A program made the position numbers and the translations under genes. A stretch of 64,000 nucleotides of DNA from Rhodosorus marinus CCMP1338. Lineage: Eukaryota > Plantae > Rhodophyta. The DNA lies in the NCBI GenBank assembly GCA_029953675.1, contig JAMWBK010000001.1, positions 2,480,001 through 2,544,000 of the forward strand, given 5' to 3'. This document shows positions 1-36,478 of the stretch, one piece after another; the first letter of the stretch is position 1, and every line of letters begins with the position of its first letter. The notes under the pieces were generated by a model. The model saw only the letters and a program-made list of their open reading frames with translations. It searched no databases and was not told where the DNA came from.

Positions 1-655
1 GCCTTCTTGTCGTTTCTTTCCGGGAGCACCGTCCGCCCCTGTTGTAGACGTATTTGGGGAACTTCCAGTCTAACGCCGGTGCCTGCGTCCACTCCCTTGC
101 CGATACTCCGGCGGGGAGCTCTGTCCCGCGCCTTTCTGCTGCTCGCGCGGAACATGCCGCCCCGACAATTCCTGATCCCACTGTGCCTCCCCTGGATGTT
201 GGCCAACCCGCCCATGGTCCGTCTTTGGAGCCGAATCCTGCGCCTACAGGTTTCTCGATTCTCCCTCCCCTCGGATTCCCAGGTCCTTCGGTTTCCAGGT
301 CCTTCGGCGTGATTCCTCTGAACAACGCACGACGGCCATACTGCGCGTGATGACCTCTCCTGTGACCACTCCTGCGTCCTCTCGCCAGTTTTCGCCGATT
401 GCTCTCGCCTGGATGACGAACGTGCGCTCGCAGACCCCTCCCGATGTCTGGGCCGCACTCTCGTGCACAACCGTGATTTCCGTGGGACCATAGCTTCCTC
501 ACTTGGAGTCCCTCCATCAGAGTTCCTTTTCGTGGATTTCACTGGGCCTCATGTCTGGTTTCTCGTCACCAAGAATGCCTATCAATTCTTTACCTCGCTT
601 CTCGCCACTCGTCAGCCTCAGCGCTCTGCCCTCGCGAACATGATCCCAACTCGCC
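1..655 (+). pseudogene. Truncated ORF1 of a family-B-like CRE retrotransposon (diverged subfamily)
   Basis: The translation RDFRGTIASSLGVPPSEFLFVDFTGPHVWFLV...QRSALANM matches B ORF1 (RDFRDTMASSLGVAPSEFLYVDFTGPHACFLV...QRSALANM). It is frameshifted and breaks off at about 650. Confidence 0.85.
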
Positions 656-1595: not shown

Positions 1596-3017
1596 ATGAT
1601 AGTGCGGGAGGTGCGGGGGCCGTACCCAGAGCCAATTCTCATCCCCGGTTCACCGGCACCGGGTCCCGTGGAAGTGTTACATGCACTGCAGCACCGCGCT
1701 GTGTGAGCAGAGCAGCAACCAAGGACATCGACACCAGCAGAAGACGTTACGCAGGCGGGAAGCAGGAATGAGACTGATGCCACTAATGGTCCAGCCGCCT
1801 CTTTCATGCAACAGCTGCGCACCTGTGACCAGTTTTGTCATGGTGTGGGCATTGGGGAAGCAGCCGTCCAGGAGTTCTACAAGGCGATCTTTAAGTTGTA
1901 CTCCCGCATTGGGAGCACCAACGACCTCACTGGCGTCACTCGATGCCTCTACCAGCTAGCAGACTCACCCCAGACGTGGACTTGGGGCCAGGGAAGCGAG
2001 AATTCTCCCTCCCCACAGGGACCGCAACAGGAGATCAACAGGGCCGTTACGCAACGACAGCAGCAAATTCAAATCTCGGACGGGACCGGAGATCTGGGGA
2101 CGGGGATACCCAGATATAACCAGACAAGGACAGGCGCCCAAGATTTAGGAGCCCGCCTCTATGCGCCCAAGGGAGAGACAGGTGTCCTCGATCCAGTGCA
2201 ATATGCAGAGGCTTTCCCAGCCATTGGGAACGGCAATGCCAGGCCAACGTATGCCGATTTCGCAGCTCAGAGCGCCCCAGGAAGAGGAGATGCACGATCC
2301 CGAACTGTTTCACGCCCAGGACCGCAGACCCAGCAGGCAGCTCTGCGGCAATTGCATGCAACGGTCGGGGGGTCAGCCTGGGGACCCGACGTCAAACCGG
2401 CCCTTGTGACCCTACGGAACGTGCGACCTCCCAGGATGGATGAGGTGGCCCACGCGGACTTTGCAACGGCTCTTTGCAGAGCACTGGGGATCCCCAGCTC
2501 CTACGTGGCGCATGTGGACTTCATTTCATCCCATGCCTGCTTGCTCTACCATCCAGGTGCGATCCCGATTCTACAAAGCGCGATTTCTCGGGGAGTTCCC
2601 CGAACAGGGATTTTCGGATCTTTTACCCAGCGAAACGCGTCAAGTGAGCCTGTAAACTGGCGAAACTCTTGAGCCTAACAACCTCTGGGCTACCTAGAAC
2701 GCCAAGGTATTGCCCCCGCAGATATTGCGGCCCAGACTCTGAAGCGGGCCATCGAACAGCTTATCCGGATTCGTTCGAGGATCCGCAGGCGGCATCTGTC
2801 CTTCAATACTCTCGCAGCGCTCCACGATTATCTTGAGACACGACTGGAACTCCTCAAAGCAAGACAATCTCCGCCCGCGGTACCCAGGGAGAGCGCGGAA
2901 CCCCCAGAGCCTGCAGCCGCAACGAGCTCAGACGCTGAAGCCTCGTCTCCTCAGGGTGACGCACAGGCAGCCCGTGGGATTGTTGACACTCAGGGTGATT
3001 CCGGGGCAACATCCTAA
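1596..3017 (+). pseudogene. Family C ORF1 homolog (in-frame TGA at 1704-1706, frameshift near 2670)
   Basis: LRNVRP...HADF...LG...HVDF..SHACLL aligns with the A/B ORF1 core. A shifted frame after about 2685 (LIRIRSRIRRR...YLETRLELL) matches the A/B ORF1 C-terminal helix. Confidence 0.65.
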
Positions 3018-5021: not shown

Positions 5022-6629
5022 AGAAGACATGGAGTCTAAGCTGCCACATACAATCGAACTGGAAGGAGCCGACGCCGTTCGACATCAAATTCTGGGGCGC
5101 CACAAGCAAGCTTTGAAGCTAGCACATTTGGGGCGGCTCTCATATGCTGCCCGTCGACTACGGGCCACCGAGATGGCACCTTTTACCGAGGCTACCTGAC
5201 GCCAACTCAAAGCGCTCTTTCCCGACCCGGCCGGGGGGGATCTACCTGACGAGATCGCACAAGAGCTGAACTCCTTGCTCAACCTGGATACCGACGCCCT
5301 TAAGCACAGGTGGGATCCAACAAAGGCAGCTGACGAGGGCCTCCTGTCAATTGTGGCGCGTCTCCCTCAGGGCAAGAGCCCAGGCCCTAGCACATACAAG
5401 GGGCAACTGAACATACACAAGTGGCATTTTTGATTCGAGTGCTGCGACAACTCGCAACCGCTCCGGAGAAATTCTCCCCGACTCTGACTCGCGCCCTTCG
5501 AGCAGCAGACTCCTACCATTCGCGAAGCCAAAGCAAGGATCAGCACCCCAGGAAAACCCCGGCGTTCGGCCCATCGGCGTACCAGAGGTTCTACGAAAGA
5601 TAGCGACGCAGTGGGCCCTTCGCGCTGTAGTCGACCTGGTGCGTGAGCTCCTGGTGCCACTACAACTCGGTATTGGCGTCAGCGGCGGGTGTGAACGCTC
5701 GCTACATGCGATCCAGGCCCACTTGTCATGCGAACCTGATTCAGCGGTCCTCAGGCTTGACCTGAAGAATGCATTTAACCGAATTGATCGACGCGTGGCC
5801 AGGAAACTTGTCGACAAACACTTCCCAGAGCTGGCGGCAGCCTATCGACTCGGTTACGGAAGCGACGACATGGATACACCCACGCTCTGTGGTTGGCGAA
5901 CTCCGCATGGGCAGACCCAAACTTCCCGCCTTACGCTACAAGCAGCAACGGGAGTTCAACAGGGTGACCCACTGGGCCCGGTTCTGCATGCCCTATCCCT
6001 GGCGCCTTTCCTAAGGGCGATGCGCACCAAGTTCCCCAACGAAACCATCGTCGCTATTCACGATGATATCACCATTGTGGGGCCGCTACAAGCCTTAAAA
6101 GAATCCCTAGCATGGGGGGAAACCATCCTTCCTGCACTCGGAGCAAGGCTGCAACTCGGCAAGTGCACAGTGTACGGTCGAACACTGACTACAACGCGAG
6201 TAGTCAATCGTGAGATTCCCGGAGTTCACGTGACCAGAGAAGGAGTAACTATACATTCAATCCCGATAGGCAGCTGACACTACATCCGACAGGAGTGCAG
6301 GGCGCTACAAAATAAGCACGAGAAACTGTTCGAAGAAATTGCGAAACTACACCAACAGGAGCTCAATACACAAGTCGCCCCGTTCAGGTTCTGCGCGGAA
6401 ACACGGCTCGACTACGCTCTAAGATGTTTAGCCTACCAGTTCGGAAGAATGCTTGCGCGAGAGGCGGACACGACCAGATATCATCTGGAAATTCTATTCG
6501 GAGGCCTCGCTACTACGGCCACAGAGGACGACGAGTACGTGCAAATGATTTCGGACCAGAATGCACTGCCCTGCCAATGGGGGGGGGCTGGGATTTGCTA
6601 CCCGAACGCGTGTCCAACCTATCGCGTTC

Positions 6630-9372
6630 TACTGACTGACTTTACTGGCTTGGCTGGCTTTACTGGCTTTACTAGCGGTAGGGAAGCGTGCAAACCCAGG
6701 CGCCGATGGCATGCCTCGGCAAGCATGCTGCTTGAATATCGCCACAGAGAGACACTTAAACGCCGCAAAAGTTCCAAGTATTCAACAGGATGCTCAGTGA
6801 AACATTTCCGCAACCACGCAAAACTCGACTTCTCCACGTGACCAAAGCTTTCCACAATGAAAGGCTGGAACCAGTGGGAGCGACCCTCAGCGCGAGGTAG
6901 ATTGGCCATACTCTCAGCATACCGTCGTTCCTTCACGCGGCGAAGGAAGGGCTCGAAGCCGCTGCTCCCCGGCGGCGGGCATGGAGAAACACTGATAGGA
7001 ACGGCCACGCCTCCCCGCGAATCACGTCCAAAGCATGCGTCCGCGAGACGCTGTTGAACGCGTTGCGGAAGTCAACTACCAAAACGCCCCAATCAGGCCT
7101 ACTGGATCGCTCGAGCTCGATCGTATGGGTGATTAGTTCGCAACCCCCGGAAAATCCCACCCCTACCTGCCAAGGCGCCATAAAGGCGGTGGCTCGCTGG
7201 CGCTGGCATAGCCACCTCCCGGCGAGTTTCCGTAGACTCTCAACCATGCCGATCGGCCGGAGACGCGGGTGTGCCGGCTCGTGGTCGGGTTTCGTTAACA
7301 AGCAAAGCTGTGCCCGTCGCAGATGGTCCCAAGGGGCTGACGCACCCCCTGCACCCTGGAACAGCGTATTCAGGATCTTCACCAGGGCGCTATGGTCAGG
7401 TTTGCTCAAGGCCTGCAGTAATTCCGTTCGTAGCCCAGAGGGTCCAGGGCAGCGTCCACGACGGGAGGTCCGGAGCAAATCCTCCAGATCGGACTCACGG
7501 AGCGTCAGGTCGATGCGGAACCTGGCCAACTCTGGACGGTCTAAAAATGCCTCGAATTCGGGGAGAAAGTCTACGTCGGACGAGGGAACCAACGCCGACA
7601 CAGCCTGGTCGAGTCTCTCGTCGTACGGGTGTACAGGTACCTGACCCGCCAAGACCCGTGCCGCTCGGCTCAGGTCGCCAGCCACCACCAACTTCTGCAC
7701 TCGAGTCGTCCTAGGCGAGGCTGTCCCAGCACGAGTCCTCCGGCCGGATGCCCGGATGACGCCAAGTAGCTCTGTTGCAACACCTCAAATTTCCCCTTCA
7801 GGAACATGGCCAGTCGTTCCCGGACGCGCCATCTGCGCTCCGATGTGTGAGTAGGTGCCAAAATTAGGCGCGGCATGACCCCCAAAAATTCCCACATAGC
7901 GACGTCCCATTTATTACGCGCCAGACTCTGGAAAATAAAATCCAGGATTGTCCCAGCCATGGAGAGCTCTCCTCGAGGGAGGACAAGAGGCGGAATCCTG
8001 CCCGGGAGGGGTAGGGAGCCTCCTTCCAATCAAAATCCATCTCCGCAGGCGCGTGCGCCAGATGCCCCAGTCTCCGCCCTCCTTGAGGACATAAGCCTGC
8101 AAGTCCATTGGCTGCGACCTCGCAGCCGTGCCCGGGGAGCTAATCGTGCTTCTCCCCCTTAGACCCGGGGGAGTCGGTCCTCGCAGGTTTGCCTCCTAAC
8201 CTCACCAAACTAGTCAACCGGCCACTCCGCGAGGCTCGCGGGATGGCTCCCCCGGGATTCAACAAAGTAATAGGGGCGTTCTCGACCGACATGACCTCCG
8301 GCTCCCCTTCCTCGCCACTCGCACTGGACGTGGTGCTTGGAGGGAAGCCCTCTAATACTCCCAAACGCTGTAGCTCTGCCTTGTGACTTGAGGTCAGCAA
8401 AAGGTGCCTCTCAAGGACTTTACTAGCATAGCCTGAAGCGCTACGCAAGCGGTGAAGATGAACTAATAACTAGGGAGGGAAGCATGCAACCCCAGGCGCC
8501 GATGGCGCGCCTCGGAAAGCATGTCGCTGGAATATCGCCAAAGGGAGACACTTAAACGCCTCAAGAGCGCCAAATATTCAGTAGGATGCTCAGCAAAACA
8601 TTTCCGCAACCACTCTAAACCCGACTTATCGACGTGACCAAAGCTTTCCACAATGAATGGCTGGAACCGGTGAGAGCGACCCTCAGCGCAAGGCAGACTG
8701 GTCATGCTCTCATGAGAGATGAAAGGTAGAGGCGGCTGCGCGCAGATGGCGTGGACCCGACGCAAAACGCTCCAAAAGTATCCGCTCCATGCGATGAATG
8801 CGAAGCCAATGGATCGCTGCAAGCTTTCACACTGGTCTCGTGCTCAGATAGCCCTGCTGTTTCTCCGGGAGAGAGGAAAGTGCCGGAAAAACGGTTGAAC
8901 CCGAAAAGCAATACGACCTGGGGTTGAGAACGGAACCAGCGAGCGCTCTCAGGCCACTGCTCGGTAGGCTTCTCCAACAGGGCCTGCAGGTACGTGGCCG
9001 CGGTCGACGTGACCACAAGGAGAACATCGCGACCCTCATAATTTGCGAAGATGAAGTATTCGCGGCTACACCCCAAAGACTCCGCAAAAGTATCCCGAAA
9101 ATCTCGCATGGACGGGACCTGGCCCCGTGTAGTCTGGGGCGGGACGTTGCGCACCCAGAGGAATTCCAAAGTAGTCTCCGTAGGTCCGCCCTGCTGCTCG
9201 CGAGAGGGTTAAAATCTTAACATAGCCGCCGTTCGTGCGGCTGTGGTACCCTTCCGCAAAGCAGAGCCGTACGACGGGGCCCCCTTGGGACCACCAACGT
9301 GCCCCCGCCTTGGCTTTGAGCTGTCGCCCACCTGAGCGCTGGCCCAGGACGGGAAAGTCTGCTCCCGCTGAG
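6630..9372 (-). mobile_element. Family A2 copy, 5'-truncated, with an about 1.6 kb internal ORF2 deletion and a nested A1 3' end
   Basis: It carries the ORF1 C-terminal half, the ORF2 N-terminus, RT fused to RLE at 6980/6981 and tail repeats at 6630-6675. Confidence 0.85.
8414..8706 (-). mobile_element. Family A1 3' end nested in the A2 ORF1
   Basis: A1-type 3' UTR and tail, flanked by CTCTCA (8408-8413, 8707-8712). Removing it restores PFISHE-RHLLLTS. Confidence 0.85.
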
Positions 9373-16107: not shown

Positions 16108-16124
16108 AGCTGTACACTAGCAAT

Positions 16125-16245
16125 TGTTTGGCTATGCTAGCAGCATGCTCGCCGAGGCGCGCCATCGGCGCCTGGGTTTGCACGGTTCCCTACCTAGTTC
16201 TTAGTTCCTTTTCACGCAGCGCTTTAGGCTATGCTAATAAGCACT
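16125..16245 (+). mobile_element. Short A2-type 3' end directly preceding the full-length A1 copy
   Basis: gccgaggcgcgccatcggcgcctggg...ttagttccttttcacg...ggctatgctaataag. Confidence 0.8.
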
Positions 16246-16419
16246 CTGGTACGCCTTCCCCTCGATTTTCCGCGGGGCGTCGTTTGCATTTGCAACTACT
16301 TCTGTCTTCCGGGTGGGTGAGTTGCGGGGCCTTTCCTATTTGGGTTGGGTTTGGTCGATTATTCTCTCGGTGCGGTTTCATATTGGTGGTGCAACGTTTC
16401 CTTGGCGGATTCCCTCAGG

Positions 16420-17828
16420 ATGGTAGGGATATCTCCGCACTCCACGGAGCCTCCTCCCAAGGAGGCACTGCCAGGTGGGGGACTCCGTGTTCGCCTCAGC
16501 TGCGGCACGTTTTCTTCCGAGGTTGACTTGGAAGGCGCTTCTGGCACCCAGGCGCGTTCACTTATCTCCGCTGTCACCAGCCTGATCACGGCTGCGAGTG
16601 ATCGTGGAGTGCTCCCTCAGCTCACCCAGAAGCTAGGTGGGCTGGAATCGGGATTGCTGGCCAGGTCAAATTCAAATTCGGACGAGAATTTGAATTGCCC
16701 CAGAGTGGCAGCGTTGGCTGAAGGCAGTCAACATCCGGTCAATCAACATGAACCTGTCCCGGGACAGGCGAGGGCTGTTGCTTCTGCGCGGGACAGTACG
16801 ACGTTGGGGAGCGGCAGGCCGGGCCAAAACGCGCTTCAGCGCTCGGGGACTCGAGGCAATGGTGGTGGTGACTGTGCGGCAACCGGTGTGGAGGAGACTG
16901 CAGCTGTGGACTTCCCTCTCTTGGACCAGCCCTCAGGTCGTCACCAGCTCCCGGCTACTTCGGGGGCACGTGGTGGCCGCAAGGGGGCGCTTCGTACGCA
17001 TCAGTCTTGCGGAAGGGCACCACTGCCACACGTACGGCGGCTATGCTCCGTTTCATACCATCTCGCGAGCCTCAGGATGGACCTGTGGAGACCACTCTCC
17101 AATTTCTGTGGGTGCGAAATGTCCGGCCCCAGACTACACGAGGACAGGTTCCGTCTATGCGAGACTTCCGGGACACTTTTGCGGAATCGTTAGGGTGCAG
17201 CCGGGGTGATTTCTTCTTCGCAAACTATGAGGGCCGCGATGTGCTGTTTTTGGTCTCCGCAACCGCCGCCAAGTACCTGGAGGCCTTGCTGGCGAAGCCT
17301 ACCGAGCAGTGGCCTGAGAGCGCCCGGTGGCTGCGCTGCAACCCGCAGGTGGTTTTGCACTTCGATTTTGACCGTTTCTCGGGCAATTTCCTGTCTCCGG
17401 GAGAAACGGCAGGGCTCTCTGAGCATGAGAGCAGCGTGAAGGCGGCAGCGATCCATTGGCTACGGATTCAGCGCCTTGAGAGGATCTTGTTGGCGCGGTT
17501 CCGGTCGGGCCCTCGTCACCCGCGCATGGCGGTTTCCAGTTTCTTCGATCTGGAGAGGCGACTTGTGCTGACTTCGCGCTACAAGACAGAGCTGCAGCGG
17601 GTGGGGATTTTGGAGGGCTCTGCTTCCAGCACTACTTCCAGCGAGAGTGGTGAGGCAGGGGAGCAGACTGAGGGCATGGCGGTGAAGGACGCCCAGGTTA
17701 CTTTGCTGAAGCCCGCGGGATCCGTTCCGCGAGCCTCGCGGAGTGGGAGGCTCACGACTTTGGTGCGGATAGGAGGTAAGAGAGCGAGGACCGACTCCCC
17801 CGGGTCTAAGGGGGAGAAGCACGATTAG
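16420..17828 (+). pseudogene. Family A ORF1 (about 469 aa; single 1-bp deletion near 16990 in this copy)
   Basis: The ATG (MVGISP) is conserved in the A2 copy (MVGVSP). The track ORFs 16345..17193 and 17007..17828 join if one base is restored, and the A2 copy at about 27200 is in frame across this point. Confidence 0.75.
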
Positions 17829-17841
17829 CGTTTCCAGGCAC

Positions 17842-17859
17842 GGCTGCGAGGTCGCAGCC
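17842..17859 (+). promoter_or_regulatory. Conserved hairpin GGCTGCGA-NN-TCGCAGCC one base before the family A ORF2 ATG
   Basis: The stem is identical in all four A copies that span the junction (17842, 28090, 50377, and 8110-8127 on the minus strand), while the loop varies (GG, TA, GA, GG). Function is inferred. Confidence 0.7.
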
Positions 17860-17860
17860 T

Positions 17861-20800
17861 ATGGATCTACAGTCTTATGTCCTGAAGGAGGGCGGAGACT
17901 GGGGCATTTGGCGTACGCGTTTTCGGAGTTGGCTCCGGCGGTGGATTTCTTTGGAAGGAGGCTCGCTTCCCCTCCGTGGGGGCATTCCCCCAGTCGTCCT
18001 TCCTCGTGGAGACCTTCTGGTAGCTGGAACCATTCTCGATTTCATCTTCACGAGCCTGGCTCGCAACATTCGGGACACAGTCATTTGGGTTTTTCTGGGG
18101 GTCATGCCGCGCCTGATTCTGGCCCCCATTCACACATCGGAGCGCAGCTGGCGAGTACGAGACCGACTGGCCCTGTTCTTGAAGGGAGACTTCGAAGTAC
18201 TACAGCGCAGCTATTTGGCGTCGTCAGCACCATCCGCCCGTCGGACTCGGCATGGCACAGTGTCGCCCGTGCCAGCTCGAGTACAGAAATTGGTAGCAGT
18301 GGGCGATTTAAGTCGAGCGGCGCGGGTTTTGGAGGGCCAGGCGCCTGTCCTCCCCTACGATGATAGTCTCGCCCAGACGGTGTCGTCTTTGTTCCCTGAG
18401 TCCGACGTGGATTTGTCCCCTGAATTCGAGGTATTCTTGGACCGTCCGGAGTTGGCCAGGTTTCGCATCGATCTGACGCTCAGTGAGTCTGACCTGGAGG
18501 ATTTGCTTCGTACCTCGCGTCGGGGACGCTGTCCTGGACCCTCCGGACTAAGAACAGAGCTATTGCAGGCCCTGAGCCAGCCTGGCCAGAGCGCGCTTCT
18601 GAGGATCCTTAACAAGTTGTTCCAGGGCGTATCGGGTGCGTCCGCGCCATGGGAACATCTCCGGCAGGCACAGCTTTGCTTGCTCACGAAACCTGACCAC
18701 CAGCCGGCCCACCCGCGTCTCCGGCCGATCGGGATGGTGGAGAGCCTACGGAAGTTAGCCGGGAGGTGGCTGTGCCAGCGCCTTCGCCAGCGCGTCACAG
18801 CTTTTATGGCGCCCTTGCAAGTAGGGGTGGGATTTTCTGGGGGTTGCGAACTGATCACCCATGGGATCGAGCTAGAACGCGCCAGTAGGCCGGAGTGGGG
18901 AGTCTTGGTGGTTGATTTCCGGAACGCATTCAACAGCGTGTCGCGGACGCATGCGCTAGAGGTGCTCCGACGTGTGTTTCCGGAGGCGTGGCCGTTTCTA
19001 TCGGGTATTTACGGAGGGGAGAGCCTCCCCTACTTGACAACGGAGGGTACTGTTTTTCAAGCACATACTGGCGTCCAACAAGGCGACCCTTGCGGACCTC
19101 TTCTTCATGCCTGTGCCCTACAGCTCGTACTTTTACGTCTTTCGACTGAGGTCTCGGATCTTCGAATCTGCGCGTACCACGATGACGTAACATTGCTGGG
19201 CACCCCTGACACCCTGGCTAGGGGACTGACCGCGATCGAAGCGATTGCACGTCGCGTCGGTTTGACTGTGGAAACAGAAAAATGTCGCTTTCTCCCCGCG
19301 AGGGACGTGTCGCTGAACTCTCTGCCACCCACTCTGCGACTAATCAGCGAACGTGAAGGGTTCGAACACCACGGCGTCGGATTGGGGACTGACAACTTTG
19401 TCCAAGCATCCTGCGAGCGAGTTTTGGCACGGCACAAGCAACTCACCGACGCCATTCAGCACCTACCCGACAGCATGCTGCAATCGGCCTGCTTGCTTTC
19501 CCGCTTTTGTGCCGGTCCCAGACTCAACTACTGGTTGCGCAGCCTGCCTCCAGCTTGGGGCTCGTGGATCGCGGCTAAAGCCGACGAAATGACCCTGCAA
19601 CACTGGGGAACGCTCTTGGATGAGCCCCTCGATCTTGAAGCTGCTCCCGACAGGGACTTTATTCGTGCACAGATCGCTCTACCGTTGCGATTAGGGGGAT
19701 TCGGCGTCGCAGACCGTGGGCTGGTATGCTCGCCAGCGGCGGTTGCCTCCTGGGCTACCGCGCTGCGAACGTTGGTGACCTTCCGGATGCGAAGTGCCTG
19801 CCTCTTGGCTCGAGCTTTGACCAACGAGGATCCAGTGACCCTGCAGCCCCCGCTTTTGACAATTTATGATGGTCTTCAACACGCGTTCAGGAGGTGCAAC
19901 GCCGTGCCGGACGCAAATCGGTCCCGCTTTCGTTCCTGGAGGGAGCTGTTATGGGGACGAGCTGAAGCGATTGAGGATTCTCCCCTCGACCGAGTTCTTG
20001 CCGATGACGGAGAGGCTAGCCCCGGGTTACCTATTGCAGACTACCCGGGTTTGAGCCGATTGTGTAGCTCCCGCACTGATGTGATTCAACATAGCCTCAC
20101 CTGGGGCCAACACAGTGCCGCTCACACAGTCATGCTCAATTCTCCTCTCACGCCGCCTACCACTGCCGCTCGTCTCCGCGGCATGGGAGGCCACCTCTCG
20201 CACTTGTGGTTAACCACTCTACCGTCGTCATTGAGTCATCGTCTCGATGCTTTCCAGTTCCGTTCTGCCGCACGGATCTATCTCGGTTTGCCACAGCCTC
20301 CGTGGCACTCTAATCGGCCGTCTTTCTGTCAGGGATGTGAGAGCCGGATTGACGCTTGTGGCTACCACTTCCTGGGTTCCTGCGGACTGTTGCGAGGTCT
20401 CCGTACGAGGCGTCACACTCGCCTCAAGTACATCCTCAGCGAATCTTTGACTCGGATAGGGCATACGGTTGAGGTTGAGTCGGAACTGCCCAGATCCACC
20501 TCGGACTCTGCACCGCCCCGTTGTATAGCCGATCTCCTCGTCTCCGACGCTGCTGCCAGACGCTCAACATATGTGGACCTTGCGATTACCTGCCCCGTGG
20601 CCAGCGCCCACCTCACCGCAGCCGCCCGCCGCCGGGGGGCCGCGGCTTCAGCCCTTCGAAGAGTTAAGGAACGACGGTATGCTGAGAGCATGGCCAGTCT
20701 GCCTTGCGCTGAGGGTCGCTCTCACCGGTTCCAGCCATTTATTGTGGAAAGCTTTGGTCACGTCGATAAGTCGGGTTTAGAGTGGTTGCGGAAATGTTTT

Positions 20801-20932
20801 GCTGAGCATCCTACTGAATATTTGGCGCTCTTCAGGCGTTTAAGTGTCTCCCTTTGGCGATATTCCAGCGACATGCTTTCCGAGGCGCGCCATCGGCGCC
20901 TGGGGTTGCATGCTTCCCTCCCTAGTTATTAG
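17861..20932 (+). CDS. Family A ORF2: reverse transcriptase + CCHC knuckle + RLE (1023 aa, intact)
   Basis: Motifs: GRCPGPSG, RPIG, QVGVG...GGCE, VDFRNAFN, GVQQGDPCGP, YHDD, LPLRLGGFG, C-x2-C-x9-H-x4-C, RTRRH, IADLLV...YVDLAIT, KERRY, PFIVESFG. Confidence 0.95.
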   Translation: MDLQSYVLKEGGDWGIWRTRFRSWLRRWISLEGGSLPLRGGIPPVVLPRGDLLVAGTILDFIFTSLARNIRDTVIWVFLGVMPRLILAPIHTSERSWRVRDRLALFLKGDFEVLQRSYLASSAPSARRTRHGTVSPVPARVQKLVAVGDLSRAARVLEGQAPVLPYDDSLAQTVSSLFPESDVDLSPEFEVFLDRPELARFRIDLTLSESDLEDLLRTSRRGRCPGPSGLRTELLQALSQPGQSALLRILNKLFQGVSGASAPWEHLRQAQLCLLTKPDHQPAHPRLRPIGMVESLRKLAGRWLCQRLRQRVTAFMAPLQVGVGFSGGCELITHGIELERASRPEWGVLVVDFRNAFNSVSRTHALEVLRRVFPEAWPFLSGIYGGESLPYLTTEGTVFQAHTGVQQGDPCGPLLHACALQLVLLRLSTEVSDLRICAYHDDVTLLGTPDTLARGLTAIEAIARRVGLTVETEKCRFLPARDVSLNSLPPTLRLISEREGFEHHGVGLGTDNFVQASCERVLARHKQLTDAIQHLPDSMLQSACLLSRFCAGPRLNYWLRSLPPAWGSWIAAKADEMTLQHWGTLLDEPLDLEAAPDRDFIRAQIALPLRLGGFGVADRGLVCSPAAVASWATALRTLVTFRMRSACLLARALTNEDPVTLQPPLLTIYDGLQHAFRRCNAVPDANRSRFRSWRELLWGRAEAIEDSPLDRVLADDGEASPGLPIADYPGLSRLCSSRTDVIQHSLTWGQHSAAHTVMLNSPLTPPTTAARLRGMGGHLSHLWLTTLPSSLSHRLDAFQFRSAARIYLGLPQPPWHSNRPSFCQGCESRIDACGYHFLGSCGLLRGLRTRRHTRLKYILSESLTRIGHTVEVESELPRSTSDSAPPRCIADLLVSDAAARRSTYVDLAITCPVASAHLTAAARRRGAAASALRRVKERRYAESMASLPCAEGRSHRFQPFIVESFGHVDKSGLEWLRKCFAEHPTEYLALFRRLSVSLWRYSSDMLSEARHRRLGLHASLPSY

Positions 20933-21519
20933 TTCATCTTCACGCCTTGCGTAGCGCTTCAGGCTATGCTAGTAAAGTCCAATAAAGCCAGTAAAAACCC
21001 GTCCTTCCCCCCGCTTTTCCCCAGCGTGTCGCTTGAAACTACAACATTTCTCTCTCTCGTAGGGGTGTGTTGAGAGGCTTTCCCTATTCGGGTTGGGTGT
21101 GGTCAATTATTCCCTCGGCGAAGTTTTATTTTGGTGGTGTAACGTTTCCTTTGAAAATCCTCTCAGGATGGTAGGGGTATCTCCGAGCTCGACGGAACCC
21201 CATAAAAAGGACGCACTGCCAGGTGGTGGACTCAGTATTCGCCTCAGCTGCTGAACCTTCTCTTCAGAGGTTGACTGGACTTTACTAGCATAGCCTGAGG
21301 TTGACTTGGAGGGTGCTTCTGGCACCCAGGTGCGTGCACTTATCTCAGCTGTCACCAGCAAGATCACGGCTGCGGGTGATCGAGGCGTGCTACCCCAGCT
21401 AACCCAGCGGCTCGGTTCGCAAACCCGGTTAGTAGTTTGAATCCCAGAGTGTCAACTGTCGCTTAAGGCAGTCAAAATATACCAGTCAGTCAAAATCAAC
21501 CTGTCCCTGGATAGACGAG

Positions 21520-22289: not shown

Positions 22290-22638
22290 GATAGACGAGG
22301 GCGGCTGGCCTGTGCGCGGCAGTGCAGCGTTGGGCAGTGGAAGGCGGGGCCAAAACGAGCTTCTGCGCTCGGGGACTGGACGCAACGGCGGTGTTGATGG
22401 TTTCGTGAGGGTGTATGGTGCTGGCTTTTGGTGGTTTTGAGTCGCAATTGTGTTCTTCGGTGGGAGGCGCTTCTTTCTGCAGCCTTTCCCCCGCATCTTC
22501 TAGTGGTGTGGTGCGTGCTGGGGGTTGCTAGCGCCCCTTGGAGGTCGTGGTGGTTTTTCTTTGGTTGCAAACGTTGGGAACAAGTTCTCTTTTTGGGGGT
22601 TTCGTGGGGGAATCGGTTTTTCACACCTTCCAATCGTT

Positions 22639-23937
22639 ATGGTTGGGGTTTCCCCACCCATTCCGGCGGACGGAGCCGTTCTCTCAGCGCGCGTGGAGCT
22701 CTGCGTGGGCGGGTTTAGTACCGCGGCCACCCTCACGGACTGCGCTGACGAGTTAGCCCATGGGATCTGCTCGAAACTGACGAGTCTTCTTGTGAATGCT
22801 TCCTAGGAACACCGCCTGCCCCTGCTGATCGCCTATTTGGAGCGCTTCTCCGCCTCCGCGCCTGCCCCATACCCCCCGGTGCCCGTCCCCGCGGATCCGC
22901 ACGGTACAGCGGGGCCTGCCTCCACCCGACCCGAGCGCTCCGCTCCGGTCATTCCTGATTCCGACTGGCCTACCCCTATTCAAGGACAGACGCCTCCTGG
23001 GCCCGCGTCGGGCCCGAATCCTGCTCCCTCCAGTGCCCCACGTGCGACCTATTCGCAGGTCCTACGCAGGGGCTCTTCTGAACAACGCACGACGGCAATG
23101 GTGCGTATGATGCCACAACACATCCCTATTGACTCTTCTCGCCAACTATCTCCGTTCCACTTTGTTTGGATGACGAACGTGCGTCCCCAGACCCCCTCTC
23201 GTGGTCGGGGCCGCGCGCCCGTCCACTACCGCGATTTTCGCGACACCATGGCTTCCTCCCTTGGGGTCGCCCCGTCTGAATTCCTATATGTGGACTTCAC
23301 GGGCCCTCATGCCTGTTTTCTTGTTACTGACTCGGCTTACCAGTTCCTTCAATCGCTTGTAACCACCCCCGCGCCCCAGCGCTCTGCTCTGGCCAACATG
23401 ATACTGACTCGTCCTCATGTCTCTTTGTTTGTCGAGTTCGATCGTTTTGACGCCGGCTGGGTTCCTCCGTCGGCCTTGCAAAACCTGGATGCCTCGCAGG
23501 CTTCGGTTGTCGCGCTACACACTCATGCGGCGCGGCTCTCGCGCATACAGGCCAGCCTCTTCGCGCGTTTTCCTCCTCGCGGGGTCCTCCGCACCGCGCT
23601 AGAGGCCTTCCTCTCCACTGAGGCCACCCTGCTGGAAGCCCACCCTGCGTTTGACCTTCTGCCGCCGACTCTTGAGCACCCTTCCTCCCCTCGCCCTGCC
23701 TCCGAGGCTCGTGACACCGACATGGCAGAAGCACCATCGGCCTCTCCGAATCCGCTGGCTCTGGACACCCTCAGTCAAGACTCCGCTGCTGAAAACCCTG
23801 TGTCTACTTTCTTCAGGTCTTTTAGTTCCTTCGTGCGCCCTCCACGTAAGCGTCGTGCGGCTGCTGAGCCTCCCTCCGAGGCACCTCCTCCGGATATTCG
23901 ATCTGCCTTCCCGACTGAGGGGAGGCCCGATGTCTGA
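22639..23937 (+). pseudogene. Family B ORF1 (432 codons; in-frame TAG at 22804-22806 in this copy)
   Basis: The ATG gives MVGVSP, like family A. The same codon is CAG in the copy at 42325. It has an RRM-like core and a C-terminal basic patch (PPRKRR). Confidence 0.78.
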
Positions 23938-26900
23938 GTCTTCCTCCTCCGCGTGCGTGTCGTCCCGGTTACCCCTGTTTACCAGTGACCGCTCAGCCTG
24001 GCATGAGCGTGTTCTCTCGTGGTTTTCGCACCTTGTCGCCTCCTACCCGGACGGTTCCCTTCCCCTTTGTCGTCAGAGCACGGCCGTACGGCTCCCTCGT
24101 CGACTTCATAAGCCCCTAGGATTGGTGTTGGATTTTCTCTGGCAGCAGGTCGCCGCGAAGCCTCACTGCTCTGTTCGCTGGGAACTCTTGTTCTTTTTTC
24201 CCCGCCTCGTGCTCACCTCCTCTACCGTCCCCCTCAACCCACATCCTCGCCGGGTCCACCCTCGCCGAAAACTGCAAATGTTCCTTTCCGGCGACTTTGA
24301 GGACCTCGAACGTCTTTATTTCGCTTCTCTCTCTTTCTTTTCTCCTAGTGCTCCCTCAGCTTTTAGGTCTTCTCGACAGAATCGGGCGCGTCACGCGGTG
24401 GCAGGCGGTGATCTGCGGCGGGCAGCCGGGATCCTCCAGCAGCGGCAACCTGTGGTTCCATACTCCGATGATCTTTCTTCACCGCTCCGTTTGCTCTTTC
24501 CCTCGGAGGGCTCCCCTTGGGACTCCTCGTTTGAATCAGTGTTGGAAGAGTACCGCGCCGCGCCACATCCCAGTGCGCGGTTAGTGGTCAATCTGGAGGC
24601 GGTGCGTGAGTTGGTTCATGATGCTCCGAAGGGCCGTTCCCCAGGGCCCTCGGGGCTGCGGGTGGAATATCTCCGTTTCTTAAGTGATGAAGGTTTGAAG
24701 GCGTTGGCGTGGGTGGTCGAAGCGCTTGTGAATGGTGATCCCCTGTGTGAGTGTGCGTGGTTCTTGGTCGGGCGTTCTCAGTTGTGTCTGCTTTCGAAGC
24801 CCGGCCACACGGCCTCGAGCCCTGCTATTCGCCCTATTGGCCTGGTTGAGGTGGTCCGCAAATTGGCGGCGCGATGGTTAGTGAAAATCCTGGTTCCCGA
24901 ATCCCGCCGTTTCTTTGGGCACGTGCAGTTAGGCGTGGGCTATCGTGGTGGCTGTGAGTTGTTGTCTGTTTTACTCCGTTCGGAAATGGCGTACTCCCCA
25001 GATTCTGGGCTCCTCTCTGTAGATTTTACCAATGCGTTCAACCGCGTCTCTCGTCCGGCTCTCATGCACGTGGTGCGCGAAGTCTTCCCTGTAGGCTTTC
25101 CCTTTGTTAGTAGACTTTATTCTCCGCTTGGTCGTGGGGCTACCTATGACACCCTTGGCGCTTCCTCACACACGTTTGCGGCGCGCACAGGGGTACAACA
25201 GGGTGATCCCTTGTCCCCTTTCCTACATGCCTGTGGACTACAACTCGTCTTGCATTGTCTTCGCTCCGAATTCCCGCAGGTTCGTACGGTTGCATACCAC
25301 GACGACGTGTGCCTCCTGGGGCCCCCTGATACTCTAGCACTCGCCTATGATCGTCTCCGCTCCTTGGCTTCGCGGGTTGACCTGGAGGTTAATCATCACA
25401 AATCGTTCTACTGGGGAGGTGTAGCTGCACAAGAGCAGCAGGTACCTGCGTCGTTCCAGGATATTTGGAGACCGGATGGTTTTGTCCACTTAGGCATCCC
25501 CTACGGGTCGCCGTCCTTCGTTGAAGGCGAGTTGCTGCAGCTCCTCGGTAAGCACAGACAGCTGGTTGCAGAGCTTCGACGGCTACCTCCGGGCTTTCTC
25601 CAGTGCTCGTTGTTGCTGTTTCGGTATTGTTGCAGTCAGCGGTTAACCTATTGGCTTCGCTCACTTCCAACTCATTGGGGCCGGTGGTTGGCCACTCGTG
25701 CGGATGCTGAAAGTTTCCGTGACCTGGGGTATTTTCTCGATGAAGAGCTGAGCGCTCTGCCGCGACCCACCTGTGATGTTGTGCGCGCCCAGGTAGGCCT
25801 CCCATTGCGATTGGGGGGACTGGGCCTCTGCAATCGTGTTGTGGTCCAACCTGCAGCCGCAGTAGGGGCCTGGGGAACCGCACTTCCCACTTTGAGCAGC
25901 TTGGGTATCTCGAAGTTCCGCAATTTGATGGCGAGCCTCTCGCGGGGTGTCTTGCTTCCCAGCGTACCGGAAAGCGCCCAAGACTTGTTTCTGGAGCTCC
26001 AAACCGCCCTGAATTCCTGTACTAGTCTCCCCGAAACCGTTCAACCCCGTCTTCTTGACTGGCGAGCTGTATTTGACCGCTCTCGAGGCTCCGCCCCGGG
26101 GATTCGTCCTGCGCCTGAACCTGTTCTAGGGGAGATTGACCCAGTGGTTGCCGCAGAAGAAGAAGTTCCAGTTGATCCTCCTGATGATTCCCAGCGCGCT
26201 GGGAGCCGAGCTCAAGCACGCACGGATGCGCTGCAAAATATCCTTTCTTGGGACTTGCACCGTGCTGCATATGGCCGACTCCTCGCGCAGATGGTCTCAT
26301 CTTCTCGCGCTCGCGCCCGCCTACGTAGTCTTGGAGGGGTTATTAGCTCTCAGTGGCTCATGACCGTACCAGCCTTTCCGCCACTCACACTGTCGGATTT
26401 CGAAGTGCGTACTTCACTGTGCTTATACCTCGGCTTACATCAGCCCCCCTGGCCGTACGAGATGGGTTCGTCGTGCCCTCTCTGCTCTCAGACTGAAGAC
26501 AACGCAGATTTTGGCGCCCACCTGCTCGCTAGTTGCCCGGCGGTGAAAGGTGCTCGAACCCGCCGCCACACACGGATCTTGAACCTGTTATACCGGGAAC
26601 TTCGGCCTATAGTCCGGCAAGCCGGTCTGGAAATCGAACGTGAGAAACCTTTACCCGTCGCGGACTTTCAAAATGATGAACGCCGTGTAGCCGACCTGGT
26701 GATCACCTGTGACGACAGCCGCCGTACCACATACGTTGATCTTGCTGTTCCTAACCCTCAAGCTAGTCGTTATCTCCCGGCTGCGGGGGAGCGCCGTGGA
26801 TCTGCCGCCGCCAGCATGAGACGCCGCAAAGAGATCAAATACGCGGGGGCTTTGTCTTCCCCTGGTGTTCGTGCTTCGGCACTAGCACATCGCTTGGTAC

Positions 26901-27073
26901 CCCTGATCATTGAGTGCTTTGGGTTCATGGACTCTGTTGGTTCTCGCTGGCTTCGGGAGTTGTTCCGCGAACGCCCTGACCGTCTTCAATCGTTGTTTAC
27001 CCGCTTAAGTTTCCTGCTGTGGCGCATGAATGCCGCTTTGATGTTGGAGGCGCGAGTACTTCGCCGCGCTTAG
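23930..27073 (+). CDS. Family B ORF2: reverse transcriptase + CCHC knuckle + RLE (1047 aa, intact)
   Basis: The ATG at 23930 overlaps the ORF1 stop (ATGTCTGA). Motifs: GRSPGPSG, VDFTNAFN, GVQQGDPLSP, YHDD, LPLRLGGLG, C-x2-C-x11-H-x4-C, RTRRH, VADLVI...YVDLAV, KEIKY. Confidence 0.93.
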   Translation: MSESSSSACVSSRLPLFTSDRSAWHERVLSWFSHLVASYPDGSLPLCRQSTAVRLPRRLHKPLGLVLDFLWQQVAAKPHCSVRWELLFFFPRLVLTSSTVPLNPHPRRVHPRRKLQMFLSGDFEDLERLYFASLSFFSPSAPSAFRSSRQNRARHAVAGGDLRRAAGILQQRQPVVPYSDDLSSPLRLLFPSEGSPWDSSFESVLEEYRAAPHPSARLVVNLEAVRELVHDAPKGRSPGPSGLRVEYLRFLSDEGLKALAWVVEALVNGDPLCECAWFLVGRSQLCLLSKPGHTASSPAIRPIGLVEVVRKLAARWLVKILVPESRRFFGHVQLGVGYRGGCELLSVLLRSEMAYSPDSGLLSVDFTNAFNRVSRPALMHVVREVFPVGFPFVSRLYSPLGRGATYDTLGASSHTFAARTGVQQGDPLSPFLHACGLQLVLHCLRSEFPQVRTVAYHDDVCLLGPPDTLALAYDRLRSLASRVDLEVNHHKSFYWGGVAAQEQQVPASFQDIWRPDGFVHLGIPYGSPSFVEGELLQLLGKHRQLVAELRRLPPGFLQCSLLLFRYCCSQRLTYWLRSLPTHWGRWLATRADAESFRDLGYFLDEELSALPRPTCDVVRAQVGLPLRLGGLGLCNRVVVQPAAAVGAWGTALPTLSSLGISKFRNLMASLSRGVLLPSVPESAQDLFLELQTALNSCTSLPETVQPRLLDWRAVFDRSRGSAPGIRPAPEPVLGEIDPVVAAEEEVPVDPPDDSQRAGSRAQARTDALQNILSWDLHRAAYGRLLAQMVSSSRARARLRSLGGVISSQWLMTVPAFPPLTLSDFEVRTSLCLYLGLHQPPWPYEMGSSCPLCSQTEDNADFGAHLLASCPAVKGARTRRHTRILNLLYRELRPIVRQAGLEIEREKPLPVADFQNDERRVADLVITCDDSRRTTYVDLAVPNPQASRYLPAAGERRGSAAASMRRRKEIKYAGALSSPGVRASALAHRLVPLIIECFGFMDSVGSRWLRELFRERPDRLQSLFTRLSFLLWRMNAALMLEARVLRRA

Positions 27074-30000
27074 TCTTTTTTTCCCCTCGGGGTTTTTTTT
27101 TCAGCCTCCGATTAAACCATTCGTTCGTTGATTGTGAGGCAACTGGTTTGGTGACTAATGAAGCTGTGTCTCCAGGTTTAGCACCTCTCTCATCTGGAGC
27201 GGACTTCCCGGTCCTCGGCAGGCGTAGTGATCGCCCCAAGGCGGGGCCATCGTACATTTCGGCGCTGCGGAGAGGTACCACTGACGCCCGTACGGCGGCA
27301 ATGATACACGATTTGCCTCATAGCGAGCCTCAGCTTAGAACCGCGGAAACCACTTTGCAATTTGTCTGAGTGCGGAACGTTCGGCCGCAGACAACCCGGG
27401 CCCAGGTGCCGAACATGCGCGTTTTTCGCAACGTTTTCGCGAAATCCTTGGGCTGTAGTCGGGAACACTTTATCTTTGCCAACTACGAGGGTCGGGACTT
27501 TCTTTTCTTGGTCACAGCGAACGCGCCCACGTACCTCCAGGCTTTGCTGGCCGAGCCCACCGAACAGTGGCCTGAGAGCGCCCGCTGGTTACATTCTCAC
27601 CCCCCAAGTCGCCCTGTATCTCGCGTTCGACCGTTTGCCGGGTAATTTCTGTCCCCGGGGCAGACTGAAGGGCTCTCGTAGCAGGAGAGCAGCGTGAAGG
27701 CGGCAGTCATTGGCTGCGCATTCATCGCATAAAGAGAAATATATTGGAACGTTTGCTGTAAGGTCCGCGTCACCTGCGCACAGCCGTCTCCACCTTTGAT
27801 CGGGAGAGGCGTCTTCTGGTGACCTCGGGCCACAAGGTAGAGCTATAGCGGCTCGGGGTGTTGGAGGGATCTGCCCCTAGTGCCAGTTACATTGAAAGTG
27901 GCGAGACTGGAGCGCCGGAAGGCATGTCGCTTGAGAGAGTCCCGATCGATTCGTCGAATCCCGAAGGCAACGTGCTGCGATCCTCGCGGAGTGAGCGGCT
28001 GACAACTTTACGGTAGCCATGCAGCAAACGCGTTAGGACCGACTCCCCCGGGTCTAAGAGGGGAGAAAAACGATTAGTTCCTCGGGTTTGGCTGCGATAT
28101 CGCAGCCAATGGACCTGAAGGCCTACGTCCTGAAAGAGGGCGGAGACTGTGGCATATGGAGGACGCGTTTTCGGAGTTGGCTCAGAAGGTGGAAATCTTT
28201 GAAAGGCGGCTCCCTACCCCTCCGGGGCTAGGATCCCACCTCCCATGCTACCTCGAGGAGAGCTCTCAATATCTGGGACCATTCTCAACTTCCTCTTCGC
28301 GAGCTTGGCTCGCAACTCCCGAGACACGGTCATGTGGGAATTTTTAGGCGTGATGCCGCGCTTGCTTCTGGCCCCTGTAAACACAGCAGAACGCCGATGG
28401 AGAGTCCAGGATCGCGCTCTTCCTCTAGGGGGAATTTTTTGAGGCGTTCCAACAAAGTTGTTTGGCGTCCTCGGAGCCATCCGCCCGTAGGGCTCGGGGA
28501 GGAACAGTTTCACCCCAGAAGTCCAGAAATTGGTGGGAGTTGGTGACCTGAGTCGAGCGGCGCGGGTTTTGGAGGGCCAGGCGCCTGTCCTCTCCTACGA
28601 TGAAAGTCTCTAACAGCCGGTATCGTCTTTTTTCAACTCGTCTGAAGTGGATTTTCTCCCTGAATTCGCGTCAATTTCGGACGTTCCGGAGTTGGCCAGT
28701 TCCACATCCACCTGACGCTCCGAGAATCTGATTTGTAGGATTCGCTCCGGACCTCCCTTCGTGGACGTTAGTGTGGACCCTCCGGGCTACGAACGGAATT
28801 ATAACAGGCCTTGAGCAAGGCTGACCAGAGCGCACTGGTGAAGATCCTCAATACGCTGCTCCAGGGCGCAGGGGGTGCGTCTGCCCCCTGGGACCATCTG
28901 CGACGGGCCCAGCTTTGTTTGCACACGAAACCCGACCAGAAGCCGGCACACCCGCGTCTCCGGCCGATCGGTATGGGCGAGATTCTGCAGAAATTAGCCG
29001 GGAGGTGGCTATGCCAGCGCCTTCGCCAGAGGGTCACAGCTTTTATGGCACGTTTGCAAGTGGGGGTGGGATTTTCGGGGGGCTGCGAGCTGATCACCCA
29101 TGCGATCGAGCTGGAGCGAGCCAGTAGGCCGGACTGGGGAGTTATTGGTGGTTGACTTTCGGAACACATTTAACAGCGTCTCGCGGAGGTATGTATTAGA
29201 GGTGATTCGCTGCGTTTTCCCGGAGGCGTGGCCTTTTCTATCCGGTCTTTACGGATTGGGGAGCCTTCCCTACTTTACAACGACGGGCACCGTTTTTGAC
29301 GCACATACGGGAGTCCAACAAGGCGATCCTTGTGGGCCTGTCCTGCACGCCGTTCTCCTGCGTCTAGCGACTGAGGTGCCGGATCTTCGTATCTGCGCCT
29401 ATCACGACGACGTGACTTGGCTGGGCACCCCTGAGACCCTACCTCGGGGGTTGACCCATATCGAAGCAATTGCACGTGGAGTAGGTCTGACAGTGGAACC
29501 AGGAAAATGTCGTTTGATTACTCGAATGAAGTTACGCTGGCCTCTCTGCCATCTGCTCTCCAACTCATCGGCGAACGTGAAGGGCTCGAGCACCACGGCG
29601 TCGGTTTGGGGAGTGACATATTTGTCCAAGAATCTTGCGAACGCGCTTTGGCACGACATAAACAGCTCACCGACGCCATTGAGCGCCTACCAGACAGAAT
29701 GCTGCAATCGGCATGCCTGATTTCCCGGTTTTGTGCTGGTCCCCGGCTGAATTACTGGCTGCGCAGTCTTCCACCACGTTGGGGCTTGTGGATCGCAGCC
29801 AAGACCGATGAGAACATGCTAAAATACTGGGGAACGCTCTTGGATGAACCCCTGGTGTCCCGACAGGGATTTAATTCGTGCCCAGATCGCTCTACCGTTG
29901 CGATTATGCGGATTTGGCACGGCAGACCGTGGCCTAGTATGCTCGCCTGCAGCGGTCGCAGTCTGGGCCACCGCGCTTCCTACCTTGGTGACTTTCCGGA

Positions 30001-36397: not shown

Positions 36398-36478
36398 GGT
36401 TCTTGATTGGGCGAAACAAAGAGCTCCCGTTGCGTGGTGAAGAGGAATAGAGAATACTCGCAAAATCACTGAAGGATC

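Follow-up and report, generated by a model that had tools for sequence, protein, structure and literature searches.

In a 64,000-nucleotide stretch of nuclear DNA from the red alga Rhodosorus marinus CCMP1338 (GCA_029953675.1, contig JAMWBK010000001.1, positions 2,480,001 to 2,544,000; PMC10250338), hereafter the window, three families of retrotransposons that lack long terminal repeats (non-LTR retrotransposons), A, B and C, each carry a separate open reading frame (ORF1) of 430–470 codons directly upstream of the ORF2 that encodes a reverse transcriptase (RT) and a restriction-like endonuclease (RLE). This arrangement, reported in a preliminary description of the same DNA, was found to be present, with the corrections given below. 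ORF1 is a genuine protein-coding gene under purifying selection, carried by no fewer than three families of this lineage that are deeply diverged from one another, and it forms part of a bicistronic long interspersed nuclear element (LINE) of the RLE type. We put at roughly 0.55 the probability of the reading that its core adopts an RNA recognition motif (RRM)-type fold and that its product (ORF1p) works in the manner of ORF1 proteins from LINEs with an apurinic/apyrimidinic endonuclease (APE). In its textbook form, an RLE LINE consists of a single ORF whose N-terminus bears zinc-finger/Myb motifs, and it is mostly site-specific, ORF1 being a feature of APE LINEs (PMC5678591, PMC4640811); early-branching RLE elements have one multifunctional ORF, and the later APE elements gained an ORF1 RNA chaperone (PMC5678591). 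The Rhodosorus elements depart from that textbook form in their separate ORF1, in an ORF2 devoid of fingers and in their diverse insertion sites, and what is new here is an orphan ORF1, probably of the RRM type, a fingerless ORF2 and the absence of target specificity.

A selected upstream gene in RLE-type elements

Consistent with the preliminary description, the elements are non-LTR retrotransposons of the RLE type. RVT_1 was the sole Pfam domain of ORF2 (E=2e-15 in A, E=2e-11 in B), Pfam gave no match to an APE (Exo_endo_phos) in ORF2, and the PDB matches of ORF2 were just R2 and L1 ORF2 proteins, with R2 the best at E=1e-14 and L1 ORF2p at 1e-7. The ORF2 segment CQGCESRIDACGYHFLGSC, followed by RRHTR, ADLLV and YVDLAI, aligns with the CCHC/RHN/PD/D motifs of R2, the second HMMER domain (CCHC/RLE) being weak when taken alone (independent E-value ~1). 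Further, because the ORF2 N-terminus contains no Cys within the first 205 amino acids in A and only three, scattered, in B, the zinc-finger/Myb module is absent from A and B ORF2, and the Cys counts thus bear out the fingerless N-termini described before. In a neighbour-joining tree of the RTs, A and B pair with 81% bootstrap support, and the two lie with C amid Pyropia vietnamensis elements and metagenomic RTs; this tree does not recover the three families as an exclusive clade (3% bootstrap). A search with the C-terminal part of ORF2 for named RLE relatives, directed at the label 'CRE-like' of the preliminary description, returned just Rhodosorus matches, and no named member of the CRE clade was returned by the protein searches.

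Every window copy of A, B and C ORF1 is slightly broken by a stop or a frameshift (Table 1). In the family A gene, a 1-bp deletion at ~16984–16986 moves the reading from frame 1 to frame 0, as seen in an alignment with L001, a Logan contig that is 83.6% identical to the window copy of family A. An intact 469-codon A ORF1 is present in the same genome at 9397–10806 of the locus L004 (JAMWBK010000007.1 2,190,696–2,203,983 of 2,212,799, GCA_029953675.1; reached via a homologue), which holds one almost identical family A element and one family C element. Because L001 shifts frame at a different site from the window copy, and because the L004 copy is intact, a programmed or conserved frameshift in A ORF1 was rejected; the ancestral A ORF1 was a single ORF, and the frameshifts reflect decay. 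The two B copies are 99% identical in nucleotide sequence. A better C-type ORF1 than that of the window is annotated in R. marinus as the hypothetical protein NDN08_004843 (P0060), and the C ORF1 has P0060 and P0062 as homologues.

The junction between the two genes differs in form among the families. In B, the stop of ORF1 and the ATG of ORF2 overlap as ATGTCTGA (23930–23937 in copy 1 and 43617–43624 in copy 2). The inverted repeat of the A spacer, GGCTGCGA/TCGCAGCC, can also be read as a hairpin in the 84%-identical L001, and the C spacer, as seen in L004, is ~110 nt long. The A hairpin and the B overlap suggest that translation of ORF2 is coupled or reinitiated, and the stop/start layout of ORF1 and ORF2 is retained in copies that are just 84% identical.

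The ratio of nonsynonymous to synonymous substitution rates (dN/dS) was calculated by the Nei-Gojobori method on diverged within-family copies, with the 1-bp deletion of A ORF1 bridged. For the whole of ORF1, dN/dS was 0.23 for A versus L001 and likewise 0.23 for B versus B', a diverged B-like fragment. Over the 202-codon core stretch at 16986–17591, A versus L001 gave 0.09 (bootstrap 0.05–0.14; dS 0.78), comparison of the A core with the older window copies A3 and A2 gave 0.12 and 0.15, respectively, and the C core versus its L004 copy gave 0.09. Outside the core of A, the comparison with L001 gave 0.3 in the C-terminal tail and 0.5 in the N-terminal half (weakly constrained). The dS of ORF1 across the three families was 0.8–1.5, and the same pairs gave 0.06–0.29 for ORF2, the C ORF2 versus L004 standing at 0.06. 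Overall, the within-family values of 0.09–0.23 for ORF1 are well below 1, as expected under purifying selection, and therefore place ORF1 far beyond a chance ORF; compared with the range of ORF2, they indicate that the ORF1 core is at least as constrained as the RT.

Because P0062, a divergent C-like ORF1, and P0065, an ORF2 fragment, come from R. marinus MMETSP transcriptomes, the elements are transcribed. Several pairs of A/B copies in the window are 98–99% identical (19054–20995 versus 47456–49387; 22398–27131 versus 42084–47312; 24509–27127 versus 33779–36398). Together with the transcriptome matches, this identity suggests recent or continuing retrotransposition, or else segmental duplication, and the elements may be active now.

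An exhaustive profile (hidden Markov model, HMM) search of 1.84 billion representatives returned eight true ORF1 matches, all of them A-, B- or C-type; the two with a recorded source are from R. marinus, and the others are JGI or Logan contigs. A ninth match, to a bacterial repeat protein, was spurious and was set aside. When the C-terminal part of A ORF1 was the query, a word-indexed search across 5.8 billion proteins returned two close matches. Nothing meaningful was found in a Pfam scan of ORF1 pieces and 19 alignment members (E<=10), and a PDB sequence-profile search with ORF1 gave no match. By these searches ORF1 is an orphan protein family, without detectable relatives beyond Rhodosorus among the 1.84 billion representatives.

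Predicted architecture, fold and role of ORF1p

From one end to the other, ORF1 comprises a short conserved N-terminal motif, a long low-complexity linker, a segment before the core, an alpha+beta core of ~100 amino acids, a helical hairpin, an acidic/Ser-rich tail and, in A and B, a basic patch. The N-terminal block that had been noted as common to A and B was recovered by BLASTP (33% identity over 76 amino acids, E=5e-6), and the basic patches noted close to the C-termini of A and B ORF1 are present in the translations as GGKRARTDSPGSKGEKHD in A and RPPRKRRAAAEPP, which includes RPPRKRR, in B. The A patch is kept in L001, in A3 and in a fragment at 50125–50361. The stretch before the core is of low complexity and is modelled with low confidence; within the segment that precedes the core, S/T-Y-x-x-x-L-R-R/K-G...RT-A-A-M is conserved in A and B, and in C just a P-[ST]-Y start is recognisable. 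Neither a CX2C motif nor a CCHC knuckle was found in the A and B ORF1 translations, in which the Cys residues are isolated, and ORF1 contains no N-terminal coiled coil, esterase or PHD domain.

The core had been described as common to all three families. For A and B this is clearly so (tblastn over the ORF1 core, 36% identity, E ~1e-31), whereas the link to C is far weaker. Core identity among the families is ~15–37%, and that of ORF2 is 32–39%. Comparison of A/B with C ORF1 by hhalign gave E=8.5e-4 with a probability of 24% over the correct 68 columns; in a profile test on a 2048-sequence set, a C-only profile matched B ORF1 at E=1e-4, and an A/B-only profile gave no match to C ORF1. The homology of C ORF1 is thus a matter of weak statistics taken together with collinearity and an identical gene position.

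When the 103-amino-acid core was modelled alone by AlphaFold2, the predicted local distance difference test score (pLDDT) was 79.9 and the predicted template modelling score (pTM) was 0.71. The predicted strands (E) and helices (H), E4-12, H26-36, E44-50, E53-59, H60-71, (H79-86) and E91-101, correspond to a beta1-alpha1-beta2-beta3-alpha2-beta4 order, as in RRM/ferredoxin-like folds. A model of the C-terminal 280 residues of ORF1 (pLDDT 64 overall and 75–89 over the core) shows the same core elements followed by two long helices, at 146–171 and 177–196 (pLDDT 64–85, mean 75). In a Foldseek search of the PDB, the most probable matches (about 0.9–0.99) were all RRM-type, the top ones being RRM1 and RRM2 of RBM30/RBM4, the RNA-binding domains of DbpA and YxiN, the GUCT domain of DDX21 and the RRM of ACF; the RRMs of Mex67 and Nab3 were matched with a probability of 0.72–0.84. 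A Foldseek search of viral structures (BFVD) gave nothing significant. In all families the first strand carries the motif hydrophobic-aromatic-hydrophobic-x-N-V (LWVRNV / VWMTNV / VTLRNV / FVLQNV), which we take, as a lead only, to resemble RNP2.

Several results weigh against an RRM-type core. The Foldseek matches to RRMs have E=0.016–0.2, template modelling (TM) scores of 0.43–0.50 and root-mean-square deviations of 5–6 A, with none at E<=0.001, and they are interleaved with other ferredoxin-like folds, namely IS200 TnpA, NIPSNAP, ACT and the PTPRN ectodomain (probability 0.2–0.66). A search of 19 members with the Pfam RRM models at E<=10 gave no RRM_1 and just xRRM, at 0.24 in one member, and hhalign against a small canonical RRM profile (U1A, hnRNP A1, PABP, SRSF1 and RBM4) was null (E=0.21). 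In addition, the alignment behind the models is shallow, with 15 rows that represent ~5 independent lineages of a single genus, and the homology of C ORF1 to A and B is statistically weak. Of the RRM-like core proposed in the preliminary description, the predicted topology and the rank of RRMs as the most probable Foldseek matches therefore hold, but a significant structural match and a match to an RRM profile are lacking. An RRM-type fold is plausible as the best single reading of the ORF1 core, and it is not established.

If the core is of the RRM type, ORF1p would bind the RNA of its own element through this core while it is being translated, would multimerise by means of the helical hairpin and would chaperone or protect the RNA in a ribonucleoprotein particle (RNP) with ORF2p, and the basic C-terminal patch could serve in nuclear entry or in nucleic-acid contact. 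ORF2 would be translated off the same RNA by reinitiation or coupling, and ORF2p within the RNP would nick DNA with its RLE and prime reverse transcription on the repeat tail.

The main rival explanation, which we regard as possible but unlikely, is that the core is ferredoxin-like and that ORF1p is not an RNA chaperone but binds DNA or chromatin for target recognition, standing in for the missing zinc-finger/Myb module, or acts as a protein scaffold. It would account for the absence of any sequence match to RRMs and for the contrast between the fingerless ORF2 of A and B and the Pyropia ORF2 P0005, which has two finger-like motifs, although that Pyropia element may hold both fingers and an ORF1-like ORF, which argues against a stand-in for fingers. 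DNA-handling folds (IS200/IS605 TnpA) do appear in the Foldseek results at E-values similar to those of the RRMs; however, the probabilities of the non-RRM matches (0.2–0.66) are clearly below those of the RRM matches, and A, B and C have no conserved HUH or catalytic motif in common. Further, with insertion sites as diverse as those described below, a sequence-specific reader of the target seems unneeded. The idea that ORF1 is not functional at all, but is decaying captured sequence or a long-frame artefact of GC-rich DNA, is hardly credible: spurious ORFs are common at a GC content of ~58% and every copy in the window is interrupted by a stop or frameshift, yet the defects lie at different places in each copy, the L004 copy is intact, ORF1 is found in transcriptomes and its core model is confident. 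The dN/dS of 0.09–0.23 in three families, at a dS of 0.8–1.5, effectively refutes this idea.

We consider it improbable that the RRM-like domain of ORF1 and the RRMs of APE-LINE ORF1 proteins (types I and II) share ancestry, either from before the split of RLE and APE elements or by transfer, in place of an independent origin in red algae. The gene position, inferred role and fold class are the same, and RRMs of different LINE ORF1 types are alike at the level of structure alone (PMC4120745); nevertheless, no sequence or profile similarity to a known family, including Transposase_22, was detected, ORF1 has neither a CCHC knuckle nor an N-terminal coiled coil, and L1 ORF1p structures were not among the Foldseek matches listed. 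No homologue was found upstream in four of the five sampled relatives, and the fifth (Pyropia, L003) gave a weak signal by hhalign and shuffling. It would likewise be a long shot to suppose that an RRM-bearing ORF1 is old in a red-algal RLE clade comprising Rhodosorus A, B and C and a diverged Pyropia element with fingers, and that it shares ancestry with the RRMs of APE-LINE ORF1. Were this so, the ORF1 chaperone would be older than the change of endonuclease from RLE to APE, or its evolution would be unconnected with that change, and the textbook pairing of RLE with one ORF and APE with two ORFs would be overturned.

Relatives, insertion and comparison with known elements

The closest relatives of ORF2, at 33–37% identity, are Pyropia vietnamensis elements (P0005 and P0017; L003 and L008) and metagenomic RTs (P0003–P0009). 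The Pyropia ORF2 P0005 has two N-terminal Cys/His finger-like motifs that are missing from A and B ORF2, and the Pyropia unit, ~7.9 kb long, is found in a head-to-tail tandem array (L008). HMMER gave no match when the ORF1 profile was run against five loci with the nearest ORF2 relatives. By eye, a same-strand ORF upstream in Pyropia (L003 1181–2644; also L008 ~6260–7700 and 14312–15775) follows the Rhodosorus core and helices collinearly and shows the motifs ETILVSGISRDV...LIADLTGVSISKFLDIDRFGSVAAVTL...RRRLTAKLRQLAGRVGLPPHLRASLAAHV...AHPA. Comparison of this ORF with ORF1 by hhalign gave E=5.8e-4 and a probability of 29%, its HMMER score of 3–4.5 bits was matched by ~1% of shuffles, and BLASTP against ORF1 returned nothing. 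The Pyropia ORF may be a very diverged homologue of ORF1.

These observations bear on the claim, made in the preliminary description, that ORF1 replaces the fingers of ORF2, which was overstated, as the ORF2 of a Pyropia relative contains finger-like motifs and an ORF1-like ORF may accompany it. If the Pyropia ORF1 is real, ORF1 predates the loss of fingers and the notion of replacement is wrong; if it is not, the contrast between fingers without ORF1 and ORF1 without fingers favours replacement. Positions 29–364 of L002, at the start of the contig with the closest non-red-algal relative of ORF2, translate to ...MIRRPPRSTLFPYTTLFRS and look like a technical or assembly artefact, and the 5' end of the L002 element therefore cannot be judged.

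The elements spread by target-primed reverse transcription (TPRT), as indicated by 5' truncation, tandem tails and a 9-bp target duplication (Table 1). Many copies are 5'-truncated and consist of the 3' part only, with intact 3' ends. Family A ends in a tail of 0.7–3.4 copies of a 9-10-nt unit and not in poly(A); young copies have AGTAAAGTCC as this unit, whereas AGTAAAACC or AATAAAGCC is seen in older copies. The tails at 49362–49395, 11413–11489 and 20972–20999 stop in different phases. The tandem repeats of the window are the elements' own 9-10-nt tails together with a few short, unrelated, low-copy arrays. A telomeric nature of the tail repeat was rejected, since the repeat differs between subfamilies and lies internally.

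The TPRT footprints are found without obvious site specificity. At ~25 family A 3' junctions, the sequences that follow are unrelated, many of the inserts being nested in other copies at differing positions, and no site-specific insertion in a repeated target was seen among them. No sign of a spliced-leader or telomeric-repeat target was found in the window, where the flanks are diverse and neither an Rfam RNA gene nor a telomere-like array is present; a search for the dinoflagellate spliced leader gave 0 matches. Full-length elements stand head-to-tail directly past the 3' tail of another copy (16124–16260 and 20933–21170), and the family A 5' leader recurs after the 3' tail of another element at 21000. 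Possible causes of this head-to-tail placement are a priming preference for an existing tail and recombination.

Like the RLE elements R2, R4, NeSL, Utopia, HERO and CRE, the Rhodosorus elements have an ORF2 with an RT, a linker, a CCHC motif and a C-terminal PD-(D/E)xK RLE, and no APE. They also share with RLE elements short tandem-repeat 3' tails, and their truncated 5' ends and duplicated target are what TPRT typically leaves. SLACS, an RLE-type element of the CRE clade from trypanosomatids, has two predicted ORFs (PMC3447711), and both SLACS and CZAR occupy a single site in the spliced-leader gene (PMC5814959). The two ORFs of SLACS mean that a two-ORF RLE layout alone is not new. SLACS/CZAR and the Rhodosorus elements are alike in being RLE elements with two predicted ORFs, whereas the Rhodosorus elements have no shared target. 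The ORF1s of SLACS and CZAR carry Cys/His motifs, absent from the Rhodosorus ORF1. Of the undescribed two-ORF RLE lineage that had been proposed, what can be retained is thus the separate, selected orphan ORF1, but not the layout, which is known in principle from SLACS.

Set beside the ORF1 of APE LINEs, for example L1 ORF1p, the Rhodosorus ORF1 is similar in that it is encoded apart from ORF2 and upstream of it on one RNA, with a predicted RRM-type core, flanking helices and a basic region. The strong selection on the core and the faster evolution of the N-terminus are also shared, and a role as an RNA-binding chaperone or RNP component would be a further likeness if the models are right. In contrast to type I ORF1p of Khazina and Weichenrieder, the Rhodosorus ORF1 has no CCHC knuckle, and in contrast to type II ORF1p (L1), it has no coiled coil before the RRM and no match to the C-terminal domain or Transposase_22, its helices following the domain instead. 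In the published ORF1 scheme it would fall into type V, unclassified (PMC4120745). The ORF2 that accompanies it is of the RLE type, unlike the partners in APE-type LINEs.

The lineage offers a test case for the need for ORF1, for the moving of RNA chaperoning and target binding between ORFs and for how often ORF1 has been invented. It also adds an orphan protein family whose members now stand as 'hypothetical protein' in R. marinus, and among the repeats of this red-algal genome, compact at 31 Mb, the elements dominate. Practical impact is modest, and to judge from the searches made here the family does not extend beyond a single genus. The lineage would become much more interesting if it were demonstrated that the fold is right and that a link to APE-LINE ORF1 proteins exists, or that the family is widespread in red algae.

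Feature coordinates and neighbouring genes

The window is eukaryotic DNA with a GC content of ~57–58% and is crowded with non-LTR retrotransposons, among them full-length copies as well as truncated and nested ones, the features of which are collected in Table 1. No tRNA genes and no Rfam families were found in the 64-kb window.

Table 1. Positions of retrotransposon features within the window (NLS, nuclear localisation signal; UTR, untranslated region)
Feature	Position	Strand	Remarks
Family A 5' UTR (5' end approximate)	16254..16419	+	Nucleotide homology with L001 begins here
Family A ORF1	16420..17828	+	469 codons once the 1-bp deletion is bridged; ATG 16420 (MVGISP...), TAG 17826-17828
A/B N-terminal block	16420..16640	+	MVG[IV]SP ... 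LSCGTFSS ... AVTSLITAAS ... LPQL
ORF1 core domain, 103 amino acids	17082..17390	+	Predicted beta-alpha-beta-beta-alpha-(alpha)-beta
Two long helices past the core (helical hairpin)	17421..17573	+	Predicted by AlphaFold2; aligned in A, B and C
A basic NLS-like C-terminal patch GGKRARTDSPGSKGEKHD	17772..17825	+	From the translation
A ORF1-ORF2 spacer, 32 nt	17829..17860	.	Perfect 8-bp inverted repeat GGCTGCGA/TCGCAGCC abutting the ORF2 ATG
Family A ORF2	17861..20932	+	Intact, 1023 amino acids; RT at amino acids 286-478, linker, CCHC at amino acids 823-841, RLE
Family A 3' UTR	20933..20999	+	Ends ...GGCTATGCTA, then a variable 9-10-nt tandem tail AGTAAAGTCC / AATAAAGCC / AGTAAAAACC
Extreme 5'-truncated A insert, 21 bp (3' terminal AGGCTATGCTAGTAAAGTCCA)	21270..21299	-	9-bp target duplication GAGGTTGAC; inside a 5' ORF1 fragment
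A3, diverged family A ORF1 copy	8143..9331	-	Split by a 5'-truncated A insert
A2, decayed diverged A-like ORF1 copy	27130..28070	+	5'-truncated where it abuts the end of B
Family B ORF1 copy 1	22639..23937	+	432 codons; single in-frame TAG 22804-22806
Family B ORF1 copy 2	42325..43624	+	Open at the copy 1 stop site; N-terminus intact; frameshift close to the 3' end
Family B ORF2 (RT-CCHC-RLE)	23930..27073	+	38.6% identical to A ORF2
B', diverged B-like ORF1 fragment	48..654	+	From sequence comparison
Family C ORF1	1596..3017	+	In-frame stops 1704-1706, 2670-2672 and 2676-2678
Family C ORF2 fragment (RT)	5555..6622	+	An A 3' fragment (3608-4963), inserted between the two, parts it from C ORF1

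Outside the window, the locus L004 lies at most ~20 kb from the end of its contig, with genes for V-ATPase C and a 2-oxoacid dehydrogenase E2 as neighbours; from this position, A and C elements may be enriched close to chromosome ends.

Among the genes of the window that are not part of the elements, a gene for an RTX-repeat protein of 530 amino acids is present between elements in two copies, at 13808–15400 and 39375–40967, within a duplicated block (13502–15438 versus 39068–41005) that is 98.5% identical. Its product has a hydrophobic, signal-like N-terminus and 11–12 matches to the calcium-binding RTX nonapeptide repeat (Pfam HemolysinCabind, E=3e-57 and 9e-66). The RTX repeat is typically bacterial and is found here in a red-algal island of transposable elements, and it possibly originated by horizontal transfer. 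Also amid the retrotransposons, a host gene on the minus strand at 53855–55495 encodes an astacin metalloprotease (Pfam Astacin, E=2e-50) that looks secreted and also contains one EGF and two C2 domains.

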